DNA from: Vitrella brassicaformis CCMP3155
Taxonomy: Eukaryota > Protista > Chromerida
Direction: 5' to 3'
Assembly: GCA_001179505.1 (NCBI GenBank)
Contig: CDMY01000745.1
Coordinates: 1 to 25,065, forward strand
DNA: 25,065 nucleotides
Under the pieces are notes generated by a model, which saw only the letters and a list, made by a program, of their open reading frames with translations, was not told the origin of the DNA and ran no database searches. Within the stretch, counting starts at the first letter, position 1. The number at the start of each line of letters is the position of its first letter. Shown here piece after piece: positions 1,160 to 12,000 of this stretch. The position numbers and the translations under genes were made by a program.

Positions 1160-2430
1160 CCGATTGTATCCTGGCGACCCCGGTCCGCCGGGCGGCGACT
1201 GCTCGGGGACGGTGGTTGGCGTTGGGGAGGGCGTGAGTCACCTGAGTGTGGGCGATGACGTCTACGGCGTGGCGCCCGGCTGCCTGCGGACCTACGTGAC
1301 GACGGAGGCCAACCTGATGGCCATCAAGCCCGCATCGATGACCTTGGAAGAGGCGGCCCCCCTGCCGGTCGTCTTTGTGACGGTCGAGGTCGCCTTTGGA
1401 GAGCTTTGCCAAGGTCACCAAGGGAGACAACGTCCTCGTGCACGCGGCCAGCGGCGGCGTGGGGCTCGCGGCCATCCAGTACTGCAGGGCCGTCGGGGCC
1501 AATGTCTATGGCACGGCGGGCAGCCAGCACAAACAGGACTCCCTACGACAGCAGGGCCTGCAGCTCGTCACGAGCTCGCGCGACGCCAACCAGTTCCAGG
1601 CCGACGTGAAGCAGACCAACAGCAAGGTCGACGTGGTGCTCAACTGCCTGATCGAGGACTTCATTCCCTTGTCGCTCGACGCGATGGCGCCCAAGGGCCG
1701 CTTCATGGAGCTGGGCAAGCGCGGCATCTGGAACAAAGAGGAGGTGCTGGCCAGGCGGCCCGACTTGGCCATGTACGAGGCGATGGCCATCGACCAGATG
1801 ATGGAGCAAGATCCCAAGTGGTTCGGCGGCATGCTCGACCGCCTCCGGGGCCTGGTCGATGTTGGCAAGGTCAAGCCCATCCCTCTGCACACATTCGACA
1901 TGAGCAGCGCCGACCAAGTCACCGGCGGCATCGCGGCCTTCAGGTTCATGCAGAGGGCCCAGCACATCGGCAAGGTCGTCATGCAAATACCGTCCGCCAT
2001 CACGCCGCCCCACACAGGCGACACACAGCGCGACGAGGCGACACCGGCCGACCGCCAAGCTGACGGATGCTATGTCATCACCGGGGGGCTCGGCGGACTC
2101 GGAATGCTCGTCGCAGACTGGCTGGTGGATGAAGGCGCGAAACACATCGCTCTTGTGTCGAGGCGCGGCAGGCCGACCGATGCGGTGGCTGCCTCTGAGC
2201 TGTGGAAGAAGCTGACGGCACCCGAGCCTCAGGGCCGCTCCAAGGCGGCCATCCACTGCATGGCCGTGGACGTGTCCAGGAAGGACGAGTGCGAGAAGGC
2301 CTTTGCCGATCTGAATGAGCGACTGCCGAACAACCCAGTGAGGGGCATCTTCCACGCCGCTGGTGTGCCTGACGACGCTGCCCTCAGCAACCAGACCAAA
2401 GACAAGGTTGAGAAGGTCTACTTGCCGAAG
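1160..2430 (+). CDS. Type I PKS/FAS exon: ER copy 2 (+1 frameshift near 1406) and N-terminal part of ketoreductase (KR)
   Basis: ER motifs as in copy 1, ending QRAQHIGKVV; KR motifs YVITGGLGGLG and HAAGVPDD; exon ends YLPK at donor GTGAGT (2431). Confidence 0.93.
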
Positions 2431-2825
2431 GTGAGTGAGACCCCCAAGCTTGCTTCGACTCTCACTCATTCACTCATTCACTGAGTCAGTCAGTCAGCCA
2501 GTCAGCCAGTCAGCCAGTCAGTCACTTGGGTTGTGAGGCAGCCAGCCAGCCAGGCCGTGGCTGCTGCCCTCGCCCTTCCTCTCACTCACTCGCATCGCCA
2601 GTCACTCACACACTTTATCACTCTTTGCTTGCGCCATTCAGTCAGTCAGTCAGTCAGGCACTCACAATTCCGTCGCTCTCTCACTCAGTCCCAGCGAGCC
2701 AGCCAGCCAGTCAGTCGAGCACTCAGTTAGGAGACCCCCAACCGGAAGAATGAATGTATCGTTCCCCTAACGAGCATTGTTTGTTACTCATCCATCCATC
2801 GCTTCTGCCTCGTGTGTGTGTGCAG
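2431..2825 (+). other. Spliceosomal intron in KR with (CAGT/CAGC)n microsatellite
   Basis: GTGAGT...TGTGTGCAG; removal joins YLPK to VMGAWYLHEL, restoring the KR PKV.GAW.LH motif. Confidence 0.92.
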
Positions 2826-3587
2826 GTGATGGGCGCGTGGTACCTCCACGAGCTGTCGCTCGACGAGGACACCCCTCTCGACCACTTCATGATGTTCTCT
2901 TCCGTCGCCTCACTACTCGGCAACTTTGGTCAGGCCAACTACTCGTCGGCCAACTCCTGCCTGGACGCCCTCACCGAGTACCGCCGATCCAAGAAGCTCG
3001 CGGCGCAGAGCATTCAGTGGGGCCCGTGGATCCAGCAGGGCATGGCGGTCGAACTCAAGCAGCACCTCGACAAGGCGGGAATGCGCGGCATAACCAACGA
3101 TCTTGGTCTTCGCGTCCTCGGCGACGTCATGCGGCACTCTGAGAGCGTCGGGGTGACGTGCTGTCAGGTCTTCAAGTGGGACATCTTCCTGTCGAGGTAC
3201 GATGTCATCCCGCCCTTCTTCGAGACAGTGCGGTCAGCTGCCACGCGGGGCGCGGCGGCAGGCGTGTCGGTTAAGCTGCGCAGCATGGATGCAGCGGCCC
3301 TCAAGGAGTACATCCACACGACAGTCGTGGATGAAGCTGCAACGGTTCTCGGCATGACGGAAGCGCCGCCTCTGGATTCCCCTCTGCAGGAACTGGGCAT
3401 CGACTCACTCGGCGCCGTCGAATTCCGCAACGCCCTGTCCTCCAAGATCGGCGTCAAGCTGCCCGCCACCACGCTCTTCGACTACCCGACGCTCAACGCC
3501 ATCATTGACTTCATCTACAGTGAGGTCTCCGGGGGGGCGGAGGAGGCGGCCGCTGTGGACGAGTGGGGTGGGCCGTTGCCTGAGGCC
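2826..3587 (+). CDS. PKS KR C-terminal part and ACP, module copy A
   Basis: FSSVASLLGNFGQANYSSAN (catalytic Tyr), SIQWGPW, ACP LGIDSLGAVEFRN with phosphopantetheine Ser, LFDYPT. Confidence 0.94.
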
Positions 3588-3887
3588 NNNNNNNNNNNNN
3601 NNNNNNNNNNNNNNNNNNNNNNNNNNNNNNNNNNNNNNNNNNNNNNNNNNNNNNNNNNNNNNNNNNNNNNNNNNNNNNNNNNNNNNNNNNNNNNNNNNNN
3701 NNNNNNNNNNNNNNNNNNNNNNNNNNNNNNNNNNNNNNNNNNNNNNNNNNNNNNNNNNNNNNNNNNNNNNNNNNNNNNNNNNNNNNNNNNNNNNNNNNNN
3801 NNNNNNNNNNNNNNNNNNNNNNNNNNNNNNNNNNNNNNNNNNNNNNNNNNNNNNNNNNNNNNNNNNNNNNNNNNNNNNNNNNNNNNN
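3588..3887. other. Assembly gap (300 N)
   Basis: Run of N. Confidence 0.99.
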
Positions 3888-3986
3888 CCAGTCATCCACC
3901 CAGTCAGCAGACTGGAAGAATGAATGCATCGTCCCTCACGAACATTGTTCTCATCCATCACTTCCGTCTCGTGTGTGTGTATGCAG

Positions 3987-5717
3987 GTGATGGGTGCCTG
4001 GTACCTCCACGAGCTGTCCCTCGACAAGGAGACCCCTCTCGACCACTTCATGATGTTCTCTTCCGTCGCCTCACTACTCGGCAACTTTGGTAAGGCCAAC
4101 TACTCGTCGGCCAACTCCTGCCTGGACGCCCTCACCGAGTACCGCCGATCCAAGAAGCTCGCGGCGCAGAGCATTCAGTGGGGCCCGTGGACCCAGCAGG
4201 GCATGGCGGTCGAAGTCAAGCAGCACCTCGACAAGGCGGGAATGCGCGGCATAACCAACGATCTTGGTCTTCGCGTCCTCGGCGACGTCATGCGGCACTC
4301 TGAGAGCGTCGGGGTGACGTGCTGTCAGGTCTTCAAGTGGGACATCTTCCTGTCGAGGTACGATGTCATCCCGCCCTTCTTCGAGACAGTGCGGTCAGCT
4401 GCCACGCGGGGCGCGGCGGCAGGCGTGTCGGTTAAGCTGCGCAGCATGGATGCAGCGGCCCTCAAGGAGCACATCCACACGGCAGTCGTGGATGAAGCTG
4501 CAACGGTTCTCGGCATGACGGAAGCGCCGCCTCTGGATTCCCCTCTGCAGGAACTGGGCATCGACTCACTCGGCGCCGTCGAATTCCGCAACGCCCTGTC
4601 CTCCAAGATCGGCGTCAAGCTGCCCGCCACCACGCTCTTCGACTACCCGACGCTCAACGCCATCATTGACTTCATCTACAGTGAGGTCTCCGGGGGGGCG
4701 GACGAGGCGGCCGCTGTGGACGAGTGGGGTGTCCCGGTACCTGTGGCCATGTCTGAGAGCCTGGCTGTGGTGAGCGTGTCGTGCCGCCTGCCCGGCGGGG
4801 TGACAACCCCCTCATCCTTCTGGTCGATGCTCATGGACAAGACCGACTGTGTCGACGAGGTGCCGCTGACCCGCTGGAACGTTGACGAGGTCTACGACGC
4901 CGACCCCGATGCCAAGGGCAAGTGCTACACGCGAAAGGCGGCCTTCATGGAGGCGGCCGACATGTTCGACAACGCCTTCTTCAACATCGGCCCCGCTGAG
5001 GTCAACTGCATGGACCCCCAGCAGCGGCTGATGCTTGAAGTGGGCTACGAGGCCTTCCACAGCGCGGGCCTCAGCCGCGAGAAGCTCATTGGCCAGGACA
5101 TGGCCGTGCTCATCGGGTGCTGCAGCCAGGACTGGAACTTCATTGACTCGACGGACAAGAGCAGCAGCTACGCTGGCACGGGAGGTGCCGTCAGCATCGT
5201 CTCCAACCGCATCTCGTACGTGTTCGGTCTCAAGGGCCCCTCCATGACCATCGACACGGCATGCTCATCTTCATTGGTGGCCATGGACGTGGCGGTCAAG
5301 GACATGCGCATGGGGGTGTGCCGCGGTGCCCTGGTGGGAGGCGTCAACCTGATGCTCTCGCCCCACCCGTTCATTGCGCTCTGCAAGGCGCGCATGCTCT
5401 CGCCGGATTGCAAGTGCCAGACGTTTGACGCCAAGGCCAACGGCTACGTGAGGGGCGAGGGTGCGTGTGCCGTGGTGCTGCGGCGCGCGAGTGATGTGGA
5501 GGCGATGAAGCTGCGGCGGCTCGCTACTGTGCTTGGCTCGTCGGTCAACCACGATGGCCGAAGTGCCAGTCTGACGGCACCCAGCGGTCCCGCGCAGCAG
5601 GAGGCCATCAAGGAAGCGCTCAAGCAGGCCGGCGTGAAGCCATCGGCCGTCTCGTACATTGAGACCCACGGCACGGGCACATCCCTCGGCGACCCAATAG
5701 AGTTTGGAGCCCTTCAG
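3987..5717 (+). CDS. PKS KR C-terminal part and ACP (copy B) followed by ketosynthase (KS)
   Basis: Acceptor ATGCAG ends 3986; KR/ACP nearly identical to copy A; KS motifs CRLPGG, MDPQQRLMLE, DTACSSS (Cys), NGYVRGEG, HGTGT (His); donor GTAAGG at 5718. Confidence 0.96.
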
Positions 5718-5868
5718 GTAAGGTACCGTACCACGTGACCGTGTACTTGCAATGCAATTCAATGCAATGCATGTACTGTATGCATGACTGACTGTACTGA
5801 CTGTATGTTTCCATGATTTGTCCTTCGATGCGATGCGATGCGATGCGATGCTATGCTATGCGATGCAG
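5718..5868 (+). other. Intron in KS with (CGATG)n microsatellite
   Basis: GTAAGG...ATGCAG; phase-0 join EFGALQ|GVLG. Confidence 0.9.
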
Positions 5869-6433
5869 GGTGTGTTGGGTCCGGGTCGCAGTGACGGCAA
5901 CCCTCTTGTGCTGGGCGCTCTCAAGACCAACATCGGGCATCTGGAGGGAGCCGCGGGCATAGCGGGTCTCGCGAAGCTCATCATGACGCTCCTGCACGGC
6001 TGCGCGGCGCCCAACCTGTACTTGACTCAGCTGAACCCCTACCTTGACATCGAGGGCTTCCCGGTGGTCTTCCCCACCGAGCCCGTGCCGCTCGTCTCTG
6101 GCCTGCCCGCCAAGGAACGCATGGTCGGCGGCGTCAGCTCCTTCGGGTTCGGCGGCGCCAATGCTCACGTCCTCGTGGAGGCCAAGGCGCTCAGTGCCGC
6201 GCAGATCGATGAGATGCTCAAAAAGGACAGTGGGTCGGCGGCGCTGCAGAACAAGATCGGGTTCATGTTCACCGGGCAGGGCTCCCAGTACGTCGACATG
6301 GGGCGCAAGCTCTATGACAACGAGAAGGTGTTCCGGGAGTGCATCGACGAGTGCGCGACCATCTTGGATCCGCTGCTGCCCGTGCCACTTACAGGCATCC
6401 TCTACCCCAAGACCGACCAGGCCAAGACCAAAA
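5869..6433 (+). CDS. PKS KS C-terminus, linker and start of cis-acyltransferase (AT)
   Basis: KTNIGHLEGAAG (second His), SSFGFGGANAH, then FMFTGQGSQYVDMG; truncated by gap. Confidence 0.95.
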
Positions 6434-6733
6434 NNNNNNNNNNNNNNNNNNNNNNNNNNNNNNNNNNNNNNNNNNNNNNNNNNNNNNNNNNNNNNNNNNN
6501 NNNNNNNNNNNNNNNNNNNNNNNNNNNNNNNNNNNNNNNNNNNNNNNNNNNNNNNNNNNNNNNNNNNNNNNNNNNNNNNNNNNNNNNNNNNNNNNNNNNN
6601 NNNNNNNNNNNNNNNNNNNNNNNNNNNNNNNNNNNNNNNNNNNNNNNNNNNNNNNNNNNNNNNNNNNNNNNNNNNNNNNNNNNNNNNNNNNNNNNNNNNN
6701 NNNNNNNNNNNNNNNNNNNNNNNNNNNNNNNNN
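6434..6733. other. Assembly gap (300 N)
   Basis: Run of N separating the PKS AT from an unrelated gene. Confidence 0.99.
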
Positions 6734-6782
6734 GGGGTTGAGTGGGCAAGAGCGAGAGGTTGATGTGTTGTGATTGCTTCAG

Positions 6783-7177
6783 GCGAGAATCCCGCCTTGT
6801 TGCAGAGCTGCTACACGACATCCCTGAACATACTCAAGGTCACACACACACGCGCGCACACACGTGTGGGGCACAGTTTGGTGTTCTTCGGTGCCATTCC
6901 ATCGTTACATGAATGGTGTCTGGCTATGCTCAGGAGAATGATCTTCGGAGCATAGCTTTTTCCTGCATCAGCACTGGGATCTTCGAATACCCCAATGCTC
7001 GGGCAGCCAAGGTCAGCCCGATGCATAAGAGATGTGAATATGTGTGTGCCTTGCCGTGCTTTAAAGGTTGCCCTCGGTACGGTGCGTGACTGGCTGAGTG
7101 ATCCCGATAACTTTGCGAGCGTCGATCGCGTGGTGTTCTGCACCTCCTTTGCCAAAGACAAGGACATATAGGAGAGG
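6783..7177 (+). pseudogene. MacroD-type macrodomain (ADP-ribose binding/hydrolase), C-terminal half, 3 exons, in-frame TAG at 7169-7171
   Basis: Exons 6783-6838, 6934-7011, 7067-7177 splice to GENPALLQSCYTTSLNILK-ENDLRSIAFSCISTGIFEYPNARAAK-VALGTVRDWL...VDRVVFCTSFAKDKDI*ER, matching the MacroD pattern CY..SL...L.S.AF.CISTG.(F/Y)GYP..AA...L.T.R.WL...VDR..C...KD..IY. N-terminus lies in the gap. Confidence 0.85.
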
Positions 7178-7317
7178 GTGGTTGCCCAATCAAACAACAC
7201 ACACACACACACGGACCCATATACACACACACACCCCTCCACAGACCCACATACTCGGCTGTCTGCCTAAAGGTGCAAACACGTATCTCCTCTGTCTGTG
7301 TCTGGGTGCCGTGTCAG

Positions 7318-8482
7318 ATTATGGATGCTGTGTTACGTGGTGAGGAGGAGGGCGAAGGCGGTGCAGCTGAGGAATACGAACCGGCAGACGACATCGAAGA
7401 GGACACATCTCCGGTGACCTCTCAGAAAGCCCCCTCGTCAACAATAACCGCAGCGATAGGAAGCCTGTTGATGTCCATTGGGTCCGAGACGAAGCAGGCG
7501 ACGTCTCAGAAAGCCCCCTTGCCAACAACGACCGCAGCGAAAGGAAGCCCATCAATGTCCATTGGGTCCCAGATGAAGCTTGCGCGGTGCTTCAATAAAG
7601 CGTATTCCTCGGTGTGCGGGAAATTATCATATGCGGCTTGGCCCTTGATTCCCAACCGCTTCAGCTTGGGAGACTTTGGCATCTTCAAAAATGGCATCTT
7701 CCACAGCAAGGGCAATATCTTGGACTTGCAACCACCGCCTTGGGACCCGAACGATAAATGCCGCGGTCCAGCATCCTGTGTGGATGTATCCTGTGGCAAG
7801 ATCAAGACTGTCAAGATGGAAGGCAAGGTAGAAGTCGAGACCCTTCCAGCGACGGGGGACGTCAGTGTTGCCTTCGAGTTTCTCTCGGAGAACACCGCGG
7901 TCTTAAGGGCATTCGTGGAGAGGGAACAGATTAGCAACACTGATAAGGTCTTATCGCGACTTGTCCTGCATCCATCTTGGAAGAGGGGTTACAAGGTGGT
8001 GACAGCCGTTGACATTGGCAAGCAGTGTGTAGCTCTTGCTGCCGAGAAGAAGTTCGCCAAGGTGGAATTCAGGGGTGAAGCTAGTATACTCAAGCAACTC
8101 GAGACCCCGTGGAGCGCCAAGGTGATACAGATATGTACACACCCACGCACATGGAAAGAGAGGGCACGAAATGCAGAGAGGTCAGACAGACAGAGTGCGC
8201 GAATGAGAGAGCATACAGATGAGAATGGCATTCATGGAGTGGCATACGTTTGTTTGCCCTCCGCTCAGGACCAACAGGGCGACCAGCAGCAGCAAATACA
8301 ACCATTCACAGTGGAGAGTCGGGGAGGGGCCATGGTTCATCTCGTTGGGGCAGAAGGCGTGATAGGGCTTGAGCTGTTGGGATGGGAAGATGTTACTGTG
8401 GAGGATCCAAGAGGAATCTTCCGGGGAATCTTCCGTCACAAGAGGCCTCTGCCTGGTCAAGTCTTCATCACCACACTCACTG
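7318..8482 (+). CDS. Acidic linker plus gasdermin-like pore-forming domain (domain about 7573-8400; in-frame 147-nt intron 8122-8268)
   Basis: Acceptor GTGTCAG ends 7317. Motif order YAAWP...LGDFG.FKNG.F...GNI; FEF.SEN...L.A; I.N.DKVL..L; W...YKVVTAV; AAEK..AKVEF.GEA; GVIGLEL parallels the strand order I recognise in bacterial gasdermins. Recognition by eye, no search run. Confidence 0.62.
7416..7583 (+). repeat. 84-bp in-frame tandem duplication in the linker
   Basis: CTCAGAAAGCC at 7421 and 7505; protein TSQKAP..T.TAA.GS..MSIGS..K twice. Confidence 0.9.
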
Positions 8483-8786
8483 GTGAGTCAGTGAGAGAGT
8501 GAGATATGGTACAGACAGACCAAGTCATTTGACGCCCATGATTGTGCTCGTTTTCTGCTGATAATTGGTCTGTACTTATAGGCGACGTGGTGATGACATT
8601 GGATGTGTCAGCCCCTCCTACACGACCGAAAGAGTGAAGGCCGACGTGCACAACCAGCTGAGTATCCCTCCTGAGGTCCAGTGCTTAGTCTTTGCCCACC
8701 GTGAGCTCGAAGACGGCCACACTTTAGCAGACTACAACGTCCGGAGCAACGACACGATCAAGCTCAGCATCCGTCTGCGAGGCGGA
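8458..8786 (+). CDS. Ubiquitin-like domain with intact C-terminal RLRGG; intron 8483-8581; 2-nt frameshift at 8605-8608
   Basis: QVFITTLTG|DVVMTLDV(S)PSYTTERVKADV...IPPEVQCLVFAHRELEDGHTLADYNV...IRLRGG aligns with ubiquitin end to end; removing one GT from GATGTGTC restores the frame. Confidence 0.9.
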
Positions 8787-8867: not shown

Positions 8868-8934
8868 CAGAGGCCGAAAGGACGCCCATTGATATCCAGT
8901 GGGTCCCAGATGAAGCTAGCGCGGTGCCTGAATA
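8868..8934 (+). repeat. Truncated second copy of linker end and gasdermin-like N-terminus
   Basis: KGRPLISSGSQMKLARC matches KGSPSMSIGSQMKLARC at 7537-7590; nucleotide similarity stops at AATA 8934. Confidence 0.88.
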
Positions 8935-9043
8935 TGCTAGAGACAGCCACAAGACACAAAATGGGGAGAGAAACTGATGCTCCCCACGGCACTCCATCCA
9001 TTCATGAATGTGTGTCTTTTCCTCTCTCTGTTGGCCGTTGTAG

Positions 9044-12000
9044 GTATCCCCTTGTGTGCAACCCTCCCTACGTGCCAGTCAAAGACAACCCCACTGGCTG
9101 CTACCTCAGGGACTTCTCTCTGCCGTCAGAATGGACCGGTCGCCGCATCCTCGCCACGTTCGGTGGCGCGTCGTCGGCCTACTACGTGTGGGTCAACGGT
9201 CAGCCGGTGGGCTACGCGCAGGACTCGTTCATGCCCAGCGAGTTTGACGTCACGGCCCTGGTGCGGCTTGGCGATGACAACACCAACACGATCGCCGTGC
9301 AGGTGATGCGGTTCTCCGACGGCAGCTACATCGAGGACCAGGACCACTGGTGGACATCGGGCGTATTCAGAGACGTGGAGACATTCGCAGCGCCCAGCAC
9401 AACCATCAGTGACTACGTCGTGCAGGCCACACTCGACAACAAATACCAGTAAGACAGCAAGGAACAGCAAGGAGGGTGTGAGCCAACGGCAGACACATGC
9501 ATGTGCTCTTGCCTTAATTGCAGGGATGGCATACTGAAGGCTCGTGTGCAGTTGGACGGCCTCCAGGATGACAAGAGCTACTCTGTCCAGTTCCGCCTCT
9601 ATGACTGGGAGGGCTTCACCATGGACCCATCGACCGAACAAGACATCAGACTGCCGGTAAGTCGGCACACACGCCGCTCGTGCCTCCCTCACACCCAAAT
9701 CGACTGTCGCATGTGTCGATCAGGACCTGTCGCCCATCTTCGAGCACACAGAGGCCGTCACCGGTGGCCAACAGACATCAACCGATGCAGCCCCATTCAA
9801 GCAGCGAGAAGAGATCCCTCTGCTTGCTGAGACATCCGCAGGCCAAGACCATCACGCATTTCTCGAGTGGACGGTGCGCGTGCCGTCTGTCCGCCCCTGG
9901 ACTGCCGAGACTCCCAACCTGTATTTCATGACCATCGGTCTGCTGGAGGGGGGCAAAAGTGAGGCGCTGCAGTGGGAGGGGATGAGGGTCGGCTTCCGCA
10001 CTGTGGAGATACGTGAGAGCCAGCTGATGGTCAACGGCAGGCCGATTGTTGTCAGAGGTGTCAATGGTCACGAACATGACCCGAAAGCAGGTGCACAAAG
10101 CAAACAAGGGAAGAGAGAGTGTGCTCACTTGTTGTATCCTTGTTGTGTTGTATTGTGTCGTGATGTGTGTCGTGGCGCAGGCAAGGCGGTGTCGCTTCAG
10201 TCGACATGGGCGGATTTGCGTCTGATGAAGCAGCACAACATCAACGCCGTGCGGACGTCTCGCTACCCCAACGCACCATTCCTATACGACATGTGCGACG
10301 AACTCGGCCTATTCGGTAAGACGACAAACAAACCAACACAACACGCACATGTAAACGCCCCTCATTGCCGCATTCATGCATGTGTGTATGGATGTGTACG
10401 TTCAGTTGTGGACGAGGCTAACATCGAGTGCCACGGCAAAGGCTACTCACCCATCCTAAAGTAACTAACACCTACCGCACACACTTCACAAGTGACGATC
10501 GCCGTTCTCACTGCCCGCTCCTGGATATATCAGGTACATATTCTTCAACTCGAGTGAGATCCCTTTCAGTCGCCTCGCATCGGACCCCGAGTACCGCAGC
10601 CAGTGGCTCGCGTGCGTCACACGCATGGCCCAGCGGGACAAGAACCACCCCTCCATCATCGTTTGGTCCCTCGGCAATGAGGCGGGCACGGGGCCCAACG
10701 TGCGGGCAGCATATCGGTGGCTGAAGCGTTACGATCCGGCCAGGCCTGTGCAGTACGAGTGTGGTGGGTCTCCCATTGACGTGTCGGACATCAAATGCCC
10801 CATGTACCCGCCGGTAGAGGTCATCAAGCAATACGGCCACCAGCAGACAGGTACACGAGGAGAGACGGCGAGAGATGGCGGGCATGCAGCCATGGACCGT
10901 GCGTGATATTCGTGTGTCTGTTGTGTTTCTGCCTGCCTGCTGCAGACAAGCGTCCGATGATATTGTGTGAGTACCAGCACGCCATGGGCAACTCCAACGG
11001 CAGCTTCAGGGAGTACTGGGAGGCGTTCAGCCATCACGCCAACCTGCAGGGCGGGTTCATATCGGGCTGGGTCGACCAGTGCGTCCCCAAGACGTTCGAC
11101 AAGATCGAGGCGTGGGCGTATGGCGGCGACTTCGGCGACACCATCAACGATGCCAACTTCAACATCAACGGCCTCGTGCTGCCGGACCGCACCATCAAGC
11201 CGTGCATGCACGAGGTCAAGTATTTCTACCAGCCGATCGCCGTCCACCTCCTCGGCGCCAAGGCAGCACCAGGCGGCGACACGGTCACGGTGACGATCCG
11301 CATCACTAATCAATTCATCCATCAGAGTGTCACACATGACATGATCCGCTTTGAGGCCGTCTTCAGCACCGACACGGCATTCGATGCCTACGAGAGCCAG
11401 GCTATCAAGTGCCCGACGCTCGAGCCTGGCGCAGGCGAGGAGGTCACGGTCGAGGGCAGGATGCCGCCCAAGAACGCTGCCATGGGCACAGAAGGGGGGA
11501 AGGAGGGCTGCATTCCTGACGTGTGGATCACTGTGAGGGCAATCCTCGGCAAGACGACTAAATGGGCTGATGAAGGGTAAGCCAGCACGAGCACGCCTGG
11601 CCACAGCACTCATCACGGTGTTCCTGTGTGTCTTGTCCGTGCAGGCATGTGGTGGCGACAGAGCGCCTCTCTCTGACCGACAGCTTCCGCGACGCTCTCC
11701 CGACCGCCCCCGGCCCCCAAACCTTTCTGCGCTTCCCGCCTGCCGGTGGTGATGCCGCTAAGGACCTGACGATAGAGGACTGCGGCGACTACGTGGCGGT
11801 GCAGGGAGAGGACTTCAAGCTCGCCTTCGACCGCGGCCGACTGGGGGGGCTCATATCGTGGGTGGCCATACCTTGGTCAAGACAGGAGTGGGCAGACCTC
11901 GCGACAAAGCCTGACCAGTAATGAGGGCGAAAGGAGGGAAACCACGCTTCTGCTACGCACCCATGTGTGTGTTGGTGGTCAGGGAGTTCGCGATTGAGTA

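Follow-up and report, generated by a model that had tools for sequence, protein, structure and literature searches.

Does a protist gene code for a gasdermin of the bacterial type, and if so, where did it come from and in what state is it now? The question is raised by a gene of Vitrella brassicaformis CCMP3155, a chromerid, found in a stretch of 25,065 nucleotides (nt) read on the forward strand (contig CDMY01000745.1, positions 1 to 25,065; hereafter the window). Chromerids are photosynthetic and form the sister group of the apicomplexan parasites. The best explanation of the evidence, to which we give a probability of about 0.7, is that positions 7573–8376, once spliced, encode a gasdermin-fold domain of ~220 residues, of the pore-forming type and of bacterial kind, whose gene was acquired from bacteria.

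The identity of the domain is carried first by its relatives. Two paralogs from the same 72.7-Mb, 1,064-contig genome, in which the window lies on contig C745, match the window protein: P0002 on contig C740 (E-value 1e-24) and P0001 on contig C839 (2e-15). A profile of the three paralogs recovers, among 1.84 billion representatives, 489 proteins at E ≤ 1e-3 and 111 at E ≤ 1e-10, mostly 235–265 residues long. The two paralog matches and the 489 relatives show that the domain is more than a chance resemblance. The profile of 108 family sequences matches the gasdermin of Bradyrhizobium (7N50) at E 6e-5 and that of Vitiosangium (7N51/8SL0) weakly, but a narrower profile of 21 sequences has no match among the solved bacterial gasdermins (bGSDMs). 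The sequence link is thus real but thin, and the profile homology to solved bGSDMs is marginal. The window protein alone has no Pfam family at E ≤ 1, whether either exon or the whole frame is used, and the animal Gasdermin family PF04598 matches neither its exons nor its frame. A phmmer search with it against the PDB gives no meaningful match, the word-indexed protein database contains no match to it, including no annotated self-match (164–521 residues), and the PADLOC bGSDM model misses it and barely sees its clade (one hit, E 0.083).

The predicted structure of the window protein has a confidence (predicted local distance difference test, pLDDT) of 91–97 across residues 1–170. All 14 top matches of the VIA structure search are gasdermins that span the model end to end. 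Foldseek against the PDB also ranks gasdermins first, with non-significant scores (E at least 0.02, low template modelling (TM) scores) that are probably due to the extended hairpins and the intron-encoded loop of the model. By ESM features, a paralog adjoins the cluster carrying PF26164 Bact_GSDM (score 0.96); in the ESM Atlas the closest models belong to bacterial clusters that carry no annotation (TM 0.55–0.68), the “Gasdermin bGSDM” cluster being farther, and the Atlas clusters are 93–100% bacterial. The window copy keeps the invariant family column G33 and all seven near-invariant ones (W23, P25, D34, G36, G47, F103, W136). The window domain has the fold of a gasdermin N-terminal domain, and no other fold was preferred in the structure and profile searches. 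This agrees with an earlier note, made from the DNA letters alone, which had read a bacterial-type gasdermin signature here. The elements listed in that note are all found, in order, in the spliced translation (7573–8121 joined to 8269–8466): P..LGD.G, FEFLSEN, ISNTDKVLSRL, YKVVTAV, AEKKFAKVEFRGEA and IGLEL, followed by a tail ...PRGIFRGIFRHKRPLPG ending RPLPG.

The family defined by these searches consists of ~240-residue proteins, largely bacterial where their origin is known and mostly unannotated. The analysis thereby exposes about 500 sequence clusters that neither the Pfam copy used (without PF26164) nor the PADLOC bGSDM model recognizes. In the alignment of 108 members most proteins start with MG or MS, and 63 have an acidic carboxyl terminus made of ...DD plus one hydrophobic residue. 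Named members come from metagenome-assembled genomes of Flavobacteriaceae and Myxococcales. Five bacterial loci were read, and in four of them a gene for CHAT or Peptidase_C14 is present within 6 kb: a CHAT protease gene directly downstream of the gasdermin (P0013 and P0040), Peptidase_C14 and CHAT genes upstream of it (P0152) or a Peptidase_C14 gene in the same block (P0046). No protease was recognized at the fifth. The same arrangement characterizes known bGSDMs, 43 of 50 of which are next to proteases, mainly of the C14 or CHAT type (Johnson et al., doi 10.1101/2021.06.07.447441). Other genes around the gasdermin relatives code for TIR, patatin and pYEATS proteins. Judged by sequence, the family appears to behave like bGSDMs, combining a short acidic tail with protease genes in defence islands at most of the few loci read. 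Three of the blocks (L004, L006, L010), in which none of the relatives is annotated, group TIR, patatin, pYEATS, Peptidase_S8 and TPR genes. Note also that the P0046 relative follows a ParA/AAA_31-like NTPase in a fusion protein and that the P0077 relative carries peptidoglycan-binding domains.

The origin of the Vitrella gene was addressed with a midpoint-rooted tree of 109 sequences, most of whose tips have no taxon label. The window copy, P0001 and P0003/P0151 form a clade (Shimodaira–Hasegawa-like approximate likelihood ratio test 98) nested among ~240-residue, largely bacterial sequences that include a Flavobacteriaceae member. Its position suggests a transfer from bacteria, the event for which the earlier note had proposed a phylogeny. 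The other member of the clade comes from the eukaryote-like assembly GCA_029979955.1, one contig of which encodes polyubiquitin and lipase; P0002 branches apart from the window copy and P0001, on a long branch. Labelled family members are almost all bacterial, and the eukaryote-like ones identified are the three Vitrella genes and the one from GCA_029979955.1, so that one or two bacteria-to-eukaryote transfers would be the parsimonious reading. With a midpoint root and mostly unlabelled tips, we infer the direction of transfer. An ancestor of V. brassicaformis would most likely have acquired the gasdermin gene from bacteria; the gene would then have gained spliceosomal introns and been duplicated to three copies, one lineage becoming fused to a ubiquitin-like domain.

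The gene is expressed and spliced. Splice joints were compared between the contigs of two RNA-like runs (X1, X2) and two DNA runs (X3, X5), and GT..AG joints are present in X1/X2 contigs only. Joints 7008>7064 and 7177>7318 are in the same RNA contigs that extend into the gasdermin exon, joint 8121>8269 (147 nt, in frame) is in one X2 contig whose shorter side measures 54 nt, joint 8482>8582 (99 nt, phase 1) is in one X1 contig, and seven further joints are in the downstream beta-galactosidase gene. Their restriction to RNA establishes that the locus is transcribed and spliced and that the intron proposed in the earlier note is real. The note's attribution to an intron-containing protist gene is likewise upheld, paralog P0002 being V. 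brassicaformis CCMP3155 in NCBI. Bacterial contamination is ruled out by the RNA-supported introns and by the eukaryotic neighbouring genes. The open frame extends from ATG 7321 to TGA 8635–8637 (356 residues) and codes, in this order, an acidic extension rich in repeats, the gasdermin domain, a 27-residue tail and a stub of ubiquitin. The domain boundary is right, since the amino-terminal Met of the bacterial homologs and of the paralogs falls on Met 7573 in the alignments. The features of the locus are the following:

6932–7177, + strand: last two macro-domain exons (6932–7008 and 7064–7177; Pfam Macro E 7.6e-7, RNA joints)
7178–7317, + strand: intron of 140 nt, GT..AG, between the macro exon and the gasdermin exon (joint in X1 and X2, absent from X3/X5)
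7321–7572, + strand: N-terminal extension, from the first ATG at 7321, with an acidic stretch and two tandem 84-nt linker repeats
7573–8121, + strand: gasdermin-fold domain, first part, 183 residues (family alignments, model, structure search)
8122–8268, + strand: in-frame intron of 147 nt, GT..AG (X2 joint; in neither paralog)
8269–8376, + strand: gasdermin-fold domain, last two strands, ending IGLEL (translation; model strands 245–250 and 254–270)
8377–8457, + strand: 27-residue tail after the last strand, LGWEDVTVEDPRGIFRGIFRHKRPLPG (translation; low-confidence model)
8458–8482, + strand: first residues of the ubiquitin-like domain (QVFITTLTG), read in the gasdermin frame, at the same position as in paralog P0001
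8483–8581, + strand: phase-1 intron of 99 nt (X1 joint; 5' end GTGAGTCAGT)
8582–8637, + strand: second ubiquitin-like strand, still in the gasdermin frame, followed by TGA 8635–8637 (frame switch at ~8605–8620)
8607–8786, + strand: remaining ubiquitin-like domain through RLRGG, in the frame of 8583 only (Pfam ubiquitin E 4.9e-11)
8875–8934, + strand: third linker-repeat copy, 87% identical to 7538–7597, including a second “MKLARC”

The open reading frames of the paralogs are continuous where the window copy has its 8122–8268 intron. The 147 nt of this intron make a whole number of codons with no stop among them, so that unspliced RNA would be translatable too.

The earlier note had ubiquitin following the gasdermin tail, which holds in part. 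A ubiquitin-like domain does start at 8458, but after the 8483–8581 intron only its first ~25 residues, corresponding to two strands, are in the gasdermin frame, which ends at TGA 8635. What remains of the domain, down to and including RLRGG at 8786, can be read solely in the frame of 8583 and covers positions 15–72 of the Pfam ubiquitin profile. No indel is found at the frame switch in DNA contigs or in RNA contigs from a different study; the frame break is therefore real. No alternative splice site restoring the ubiquitin frame was found near 8483 or 8581. The domain, being frameshifted, cannot be made as one chain, and the contiguous ubiquitin fold with carboxyl terminal GG (PF00240) that the window lacks is intact in P0001. 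This 512-residue protein is the intact form of the cassette: a gasdermin domain, a proline-rich linker, a ubiquitin-like domain (Pfam E 1.7e-16) ending LRAGG and an acidic tail. The ubiquitin introns of the window copy and of P0001 (locus L003) have the same codon, phase and 5' end. Their common intron indicates that the fusion predates the duplication and that the window copy is the degraded one.

The tail was claimed to occupy the place of the short (~20-residue) inhibitory peptide of bGSDMs. The claim has to be modified: the tail conserved in the family is the acidic carboxyl terminus, which in P0001 comes after the ubiquitin-like domain and not ahead of it, and which is not detected in the window copy. 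MAFFT aligns the post-ubiquitin stretch of P0001 with the bacterial acidic tail, and in the P0001 model it has a pLDDT of ~64–73. The inactive structures 7N50, 7N51 and 7N52 align with this model up to residue ~470, reaching their own carboxyl terminal residues, whereas the alignments of the two bacterial pore-form entries and of most other pore forms end at ~255–263. These alignment ranges suggest that the model puts the P0001 tail in the place of the bacterial inhibitory peptide. A tail-only hidden Markov model (HMM) from 47 bacterial tails yields a marginal match in P0002 (E 0.02 among six targets) and none of significance in P0001. When the P0001 core was predicted in complex with the tail that follows the ubiquitin-like domain, the score was 0.01, alignments being unused, which speaks neither for nor against binding. 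As to a short inhibitory peptide in the window copy, its 27-residue tail is modelled with a pLDDT of 70 at residues 271–280 and of about 50 thereafter. P0002 (L002, positions 1453–3027 of its contig) has no ubiquitin-like domain; a hydrophobic stretch resembling a membrane span follows its gasdermin domain and, ~200 residues further on, comes the acidic motif, a marginal match to the bacterial tail (E 0.02).

The Cys at residue 6 counted from Met 7573 (codon 7588–7590) was put forward as the counterpart of the palmitoylated Cys3/Cys4 of bGSDMs. Its alignment column is variable (K, E, S, Q...), a Cys occurs anywhere in the first 12 residues of 8 of the 108 family members, and both paralogs have none in that region. 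The motif “MKLARC” is part of a 60-nt repeat (7538–7597) that recurs at 8875–8934, and the frame starts at ATG 7321, 84 codons upstream. The variable column, the repeat and the upstream start leave the palmitoyl-Cys analogy unsupported, and the window protein does not have the conserved amino-terminal Cys (C3/C4) of bGSDMs. Some bGSDMs (Gillisia) also lack this Cys (Johnson et al., doi 10.1101/2021.06.07.447441), which is thus common but not obligatory among them. A genome-wide repeat was ruled out as the source of the “MKLARC” element, since its 27-nt core is found at two places only in the whole genome, both in the window. The 60-nt direct repeats bracket the gasdermin-ubiquitin cassette, which is preceded by the two tandem 84-nt linker units (7413–7496 and 7497–7580), the second running 8 nt into the domain. 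Each 60-nt copy ends ...GCGCG/GTGC. The GT at 8924 could, as read from the sequence, act as an in-frame donor for the beta-galactosidase exon at 9044; its counterpart at 7586–7587 is not used in RNA contigs, and no RNA contigs were found across 8905–9069, between the cassette and beta-galactosidase.

By analogy with bGSDMs, the domain would be held inactive by a carboxyl terminal segment whose removal would let it oligomerize into membrane pores and kill the cell, in regulated cell death or in defence. In bacteria the inhibitory segment is removed by the neighbouring CHAT or caspase-like protease. Whereas the fold, the homology, expression and splicing, the frame break and the gene surroundings of the bacterial relatives are shown by the analysis, pore formation, autoinhibition and the trigger are inferred, as is any activity left to the truncated window copy. 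In the ancestral Vitrella cassette the ubiquitin-like domain would have separated the pore domain from the tail. Deubiquitinases cleave proteins of this arrangement, in which a ubiquitin fold ends in GG and further polypeptide directly follows. It is conceivable, if unlikely, that a ubiquitin- or ubiquitin-like-specific protease cutting after GG replaces the CHAT or caspase-like protease as the trigger for pore formation, control of a bacterial gasdermin having passed, in this algal lineage, to the ubiquitin system. Were this so, deubiquitinase-type cleavage would gate a gasdermin, and would do so in an alveolate; neither was found described.

Several observations weigh against the preferred explanation. 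No CHAT protease was found in the Vitrella genome, and its three Peptidase_C14 loci are all on contigs other than that of the window; the adjacent protease of bGSDMs, present in the bacterial relatives, is missing from both window and genome. Gene clustering with a protease is not expected in a eukaryote. Most family members have no taxon label in a tree that is rooted by midpoint only. The tail-only HMM detects no tail motif in the window copy in any frame, its ubiquitin-like domain is broken and its branch is the longest of the eukaryotic clade (1.47 versus 0.76), so the copy may be decaying. Its 356-residue product, devoid of the acidic tail, may be regulated differently or may be becoming a pseudogene.

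The strongest alternative takes these last points further: the window copy would be a relic in decay, or a transcribed pseudogene, of the gasdermin-ubiquitin-tail cassette, its homology being real and its present function nil. The presence of the frame break in both DNA and RNA contigs, the undetected acidic tail and the long branch are in keeping with it, and the flanking 60-nt repeats, together with a beta-galactosidase whose amino-terminal Pfam domain is short of its first 48 positions, suggest a rearranged locus. Against it, the 249-codon gasdermin frame is intact and retains the invariant and the seven near-invariant columns, its model exceeds pLDDT 90, and the gene is transcribed and correctly spliced, including at an in-frame intron specific to this copy. 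We regard such a relic as rather doubtful, while giving it real weight next to the preferred reading of a bacterial-type gasdermin domain.

A second alternative arises from the upstream junction. The macro frame ends at an in-frame TAG (7169–7171), 6 nt ahead of the splice donor, and 3 nt separate the acceptor from ATG 7321; the macro and gasdermin frames are in phase with a single stop between them (...DKDI*ERIMDAV...). This junction could reflect read-through, a two-cistron mRNA or coincidence. A macrodomain-gasdermin fusion made by read-through of the TAG, or a two-cistron mRNA co-expressing sensor and effector, would account for single RNA contigs, in two runs, that carry the macro exons, the TAG, the 7178–7317 splice and the gasdermin exon, and for the position of the spliced TAG, in frame with ATG 7321, which is 9 nt downstream. 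A stop codon nevertheless separates the two frames, their in-frame relation has a one-in-three chance of occurring, and assembled contigs are no proof of a single molecule; both forms of this alternative are judged improbable.

Finally, it is very hard to credit that the domain is another beta-rich pore-former (MACPF/CDC-like or aerolysin-like) or that its fold is unrelated and resembles a gasdermin only in the model, given the end-to-end cover by gasdermins in all 14 top VIA matches, a profile match that is a bGSDM with no CDC or MACPF protein matched, and the ~240-residue size, short tail and protease neighbours that are bGSDM traits.

The remaining neighbours are on the same strand upstream, where type I polyketide synthase modules (KR, ACP, KS and the start of AT; 2754–6400) are interrupted by an N run at ~6400–6740, and downstream, where a GH2 beta-galactosidase gene (9044–11700) has at least seven RNA-supported introns. 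As read, the Pfam N-terminal sugar-binding domain of the latter is missing its first 48 positions.

Gasdermins in the literature found are from animals, fungi and bacteria, and from the chromerid branch they seem unreported. Full-text searches returned nothing pairing gasdermin with Vitrella or a protist; for gasdermin with Alveolata or dinoflagellate, the titles and abstract openings concerned other subjects, none presenting a protist gasdermin; and the text of a 2024 review of microbial gasdermins contains no protist or alga. A bacterial-type gasdermin family in a chromerid would be one more documented instance in which a cell-death effector of bacteria has entered a eukaryote, and one that brings introns, duplication and new domain fusions. 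It would also give a system in which to follow how activation is rearranged after loss of the bacterial protease partner.

The closest known systems are the bGSDMs of Bradyrhizobium (7N50), Vitiosangium (7N51/8SL0) and Runella (7N52), at ~10–17% identity, along with the fungal gasdermin-like RCD-1 and HET-Q1. Unlike these bGSDMs, the family of the window protein has no conserved amino-terminal Cys and has its own acidic ...DD-hydrophobic carboxyl terminus, while the window gene is eukaryotic, with introns, an 84-residue N-terminal extension and a ubiquitin-like domain, in a genome where no CHAT protease was detected. Animal gasdermins (GSDMA-E and Trichoplax GSDM) differ in their match to PF04598 and in their ~200-residue helical carboxyl terminal inhibitory domain, both absent from the window protein. 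Ubiquitin fusion proteins (polyubiquitin, ubiquitin-ribosomal) share with the Vitrella cassette a fold ending RLRGG (window) or LRAGG (P0001) with more polypeptide directly after it; in Vitrella, in contrast, the ubiquitin-like domain is carboxyl terminal to a gasdermin domain.
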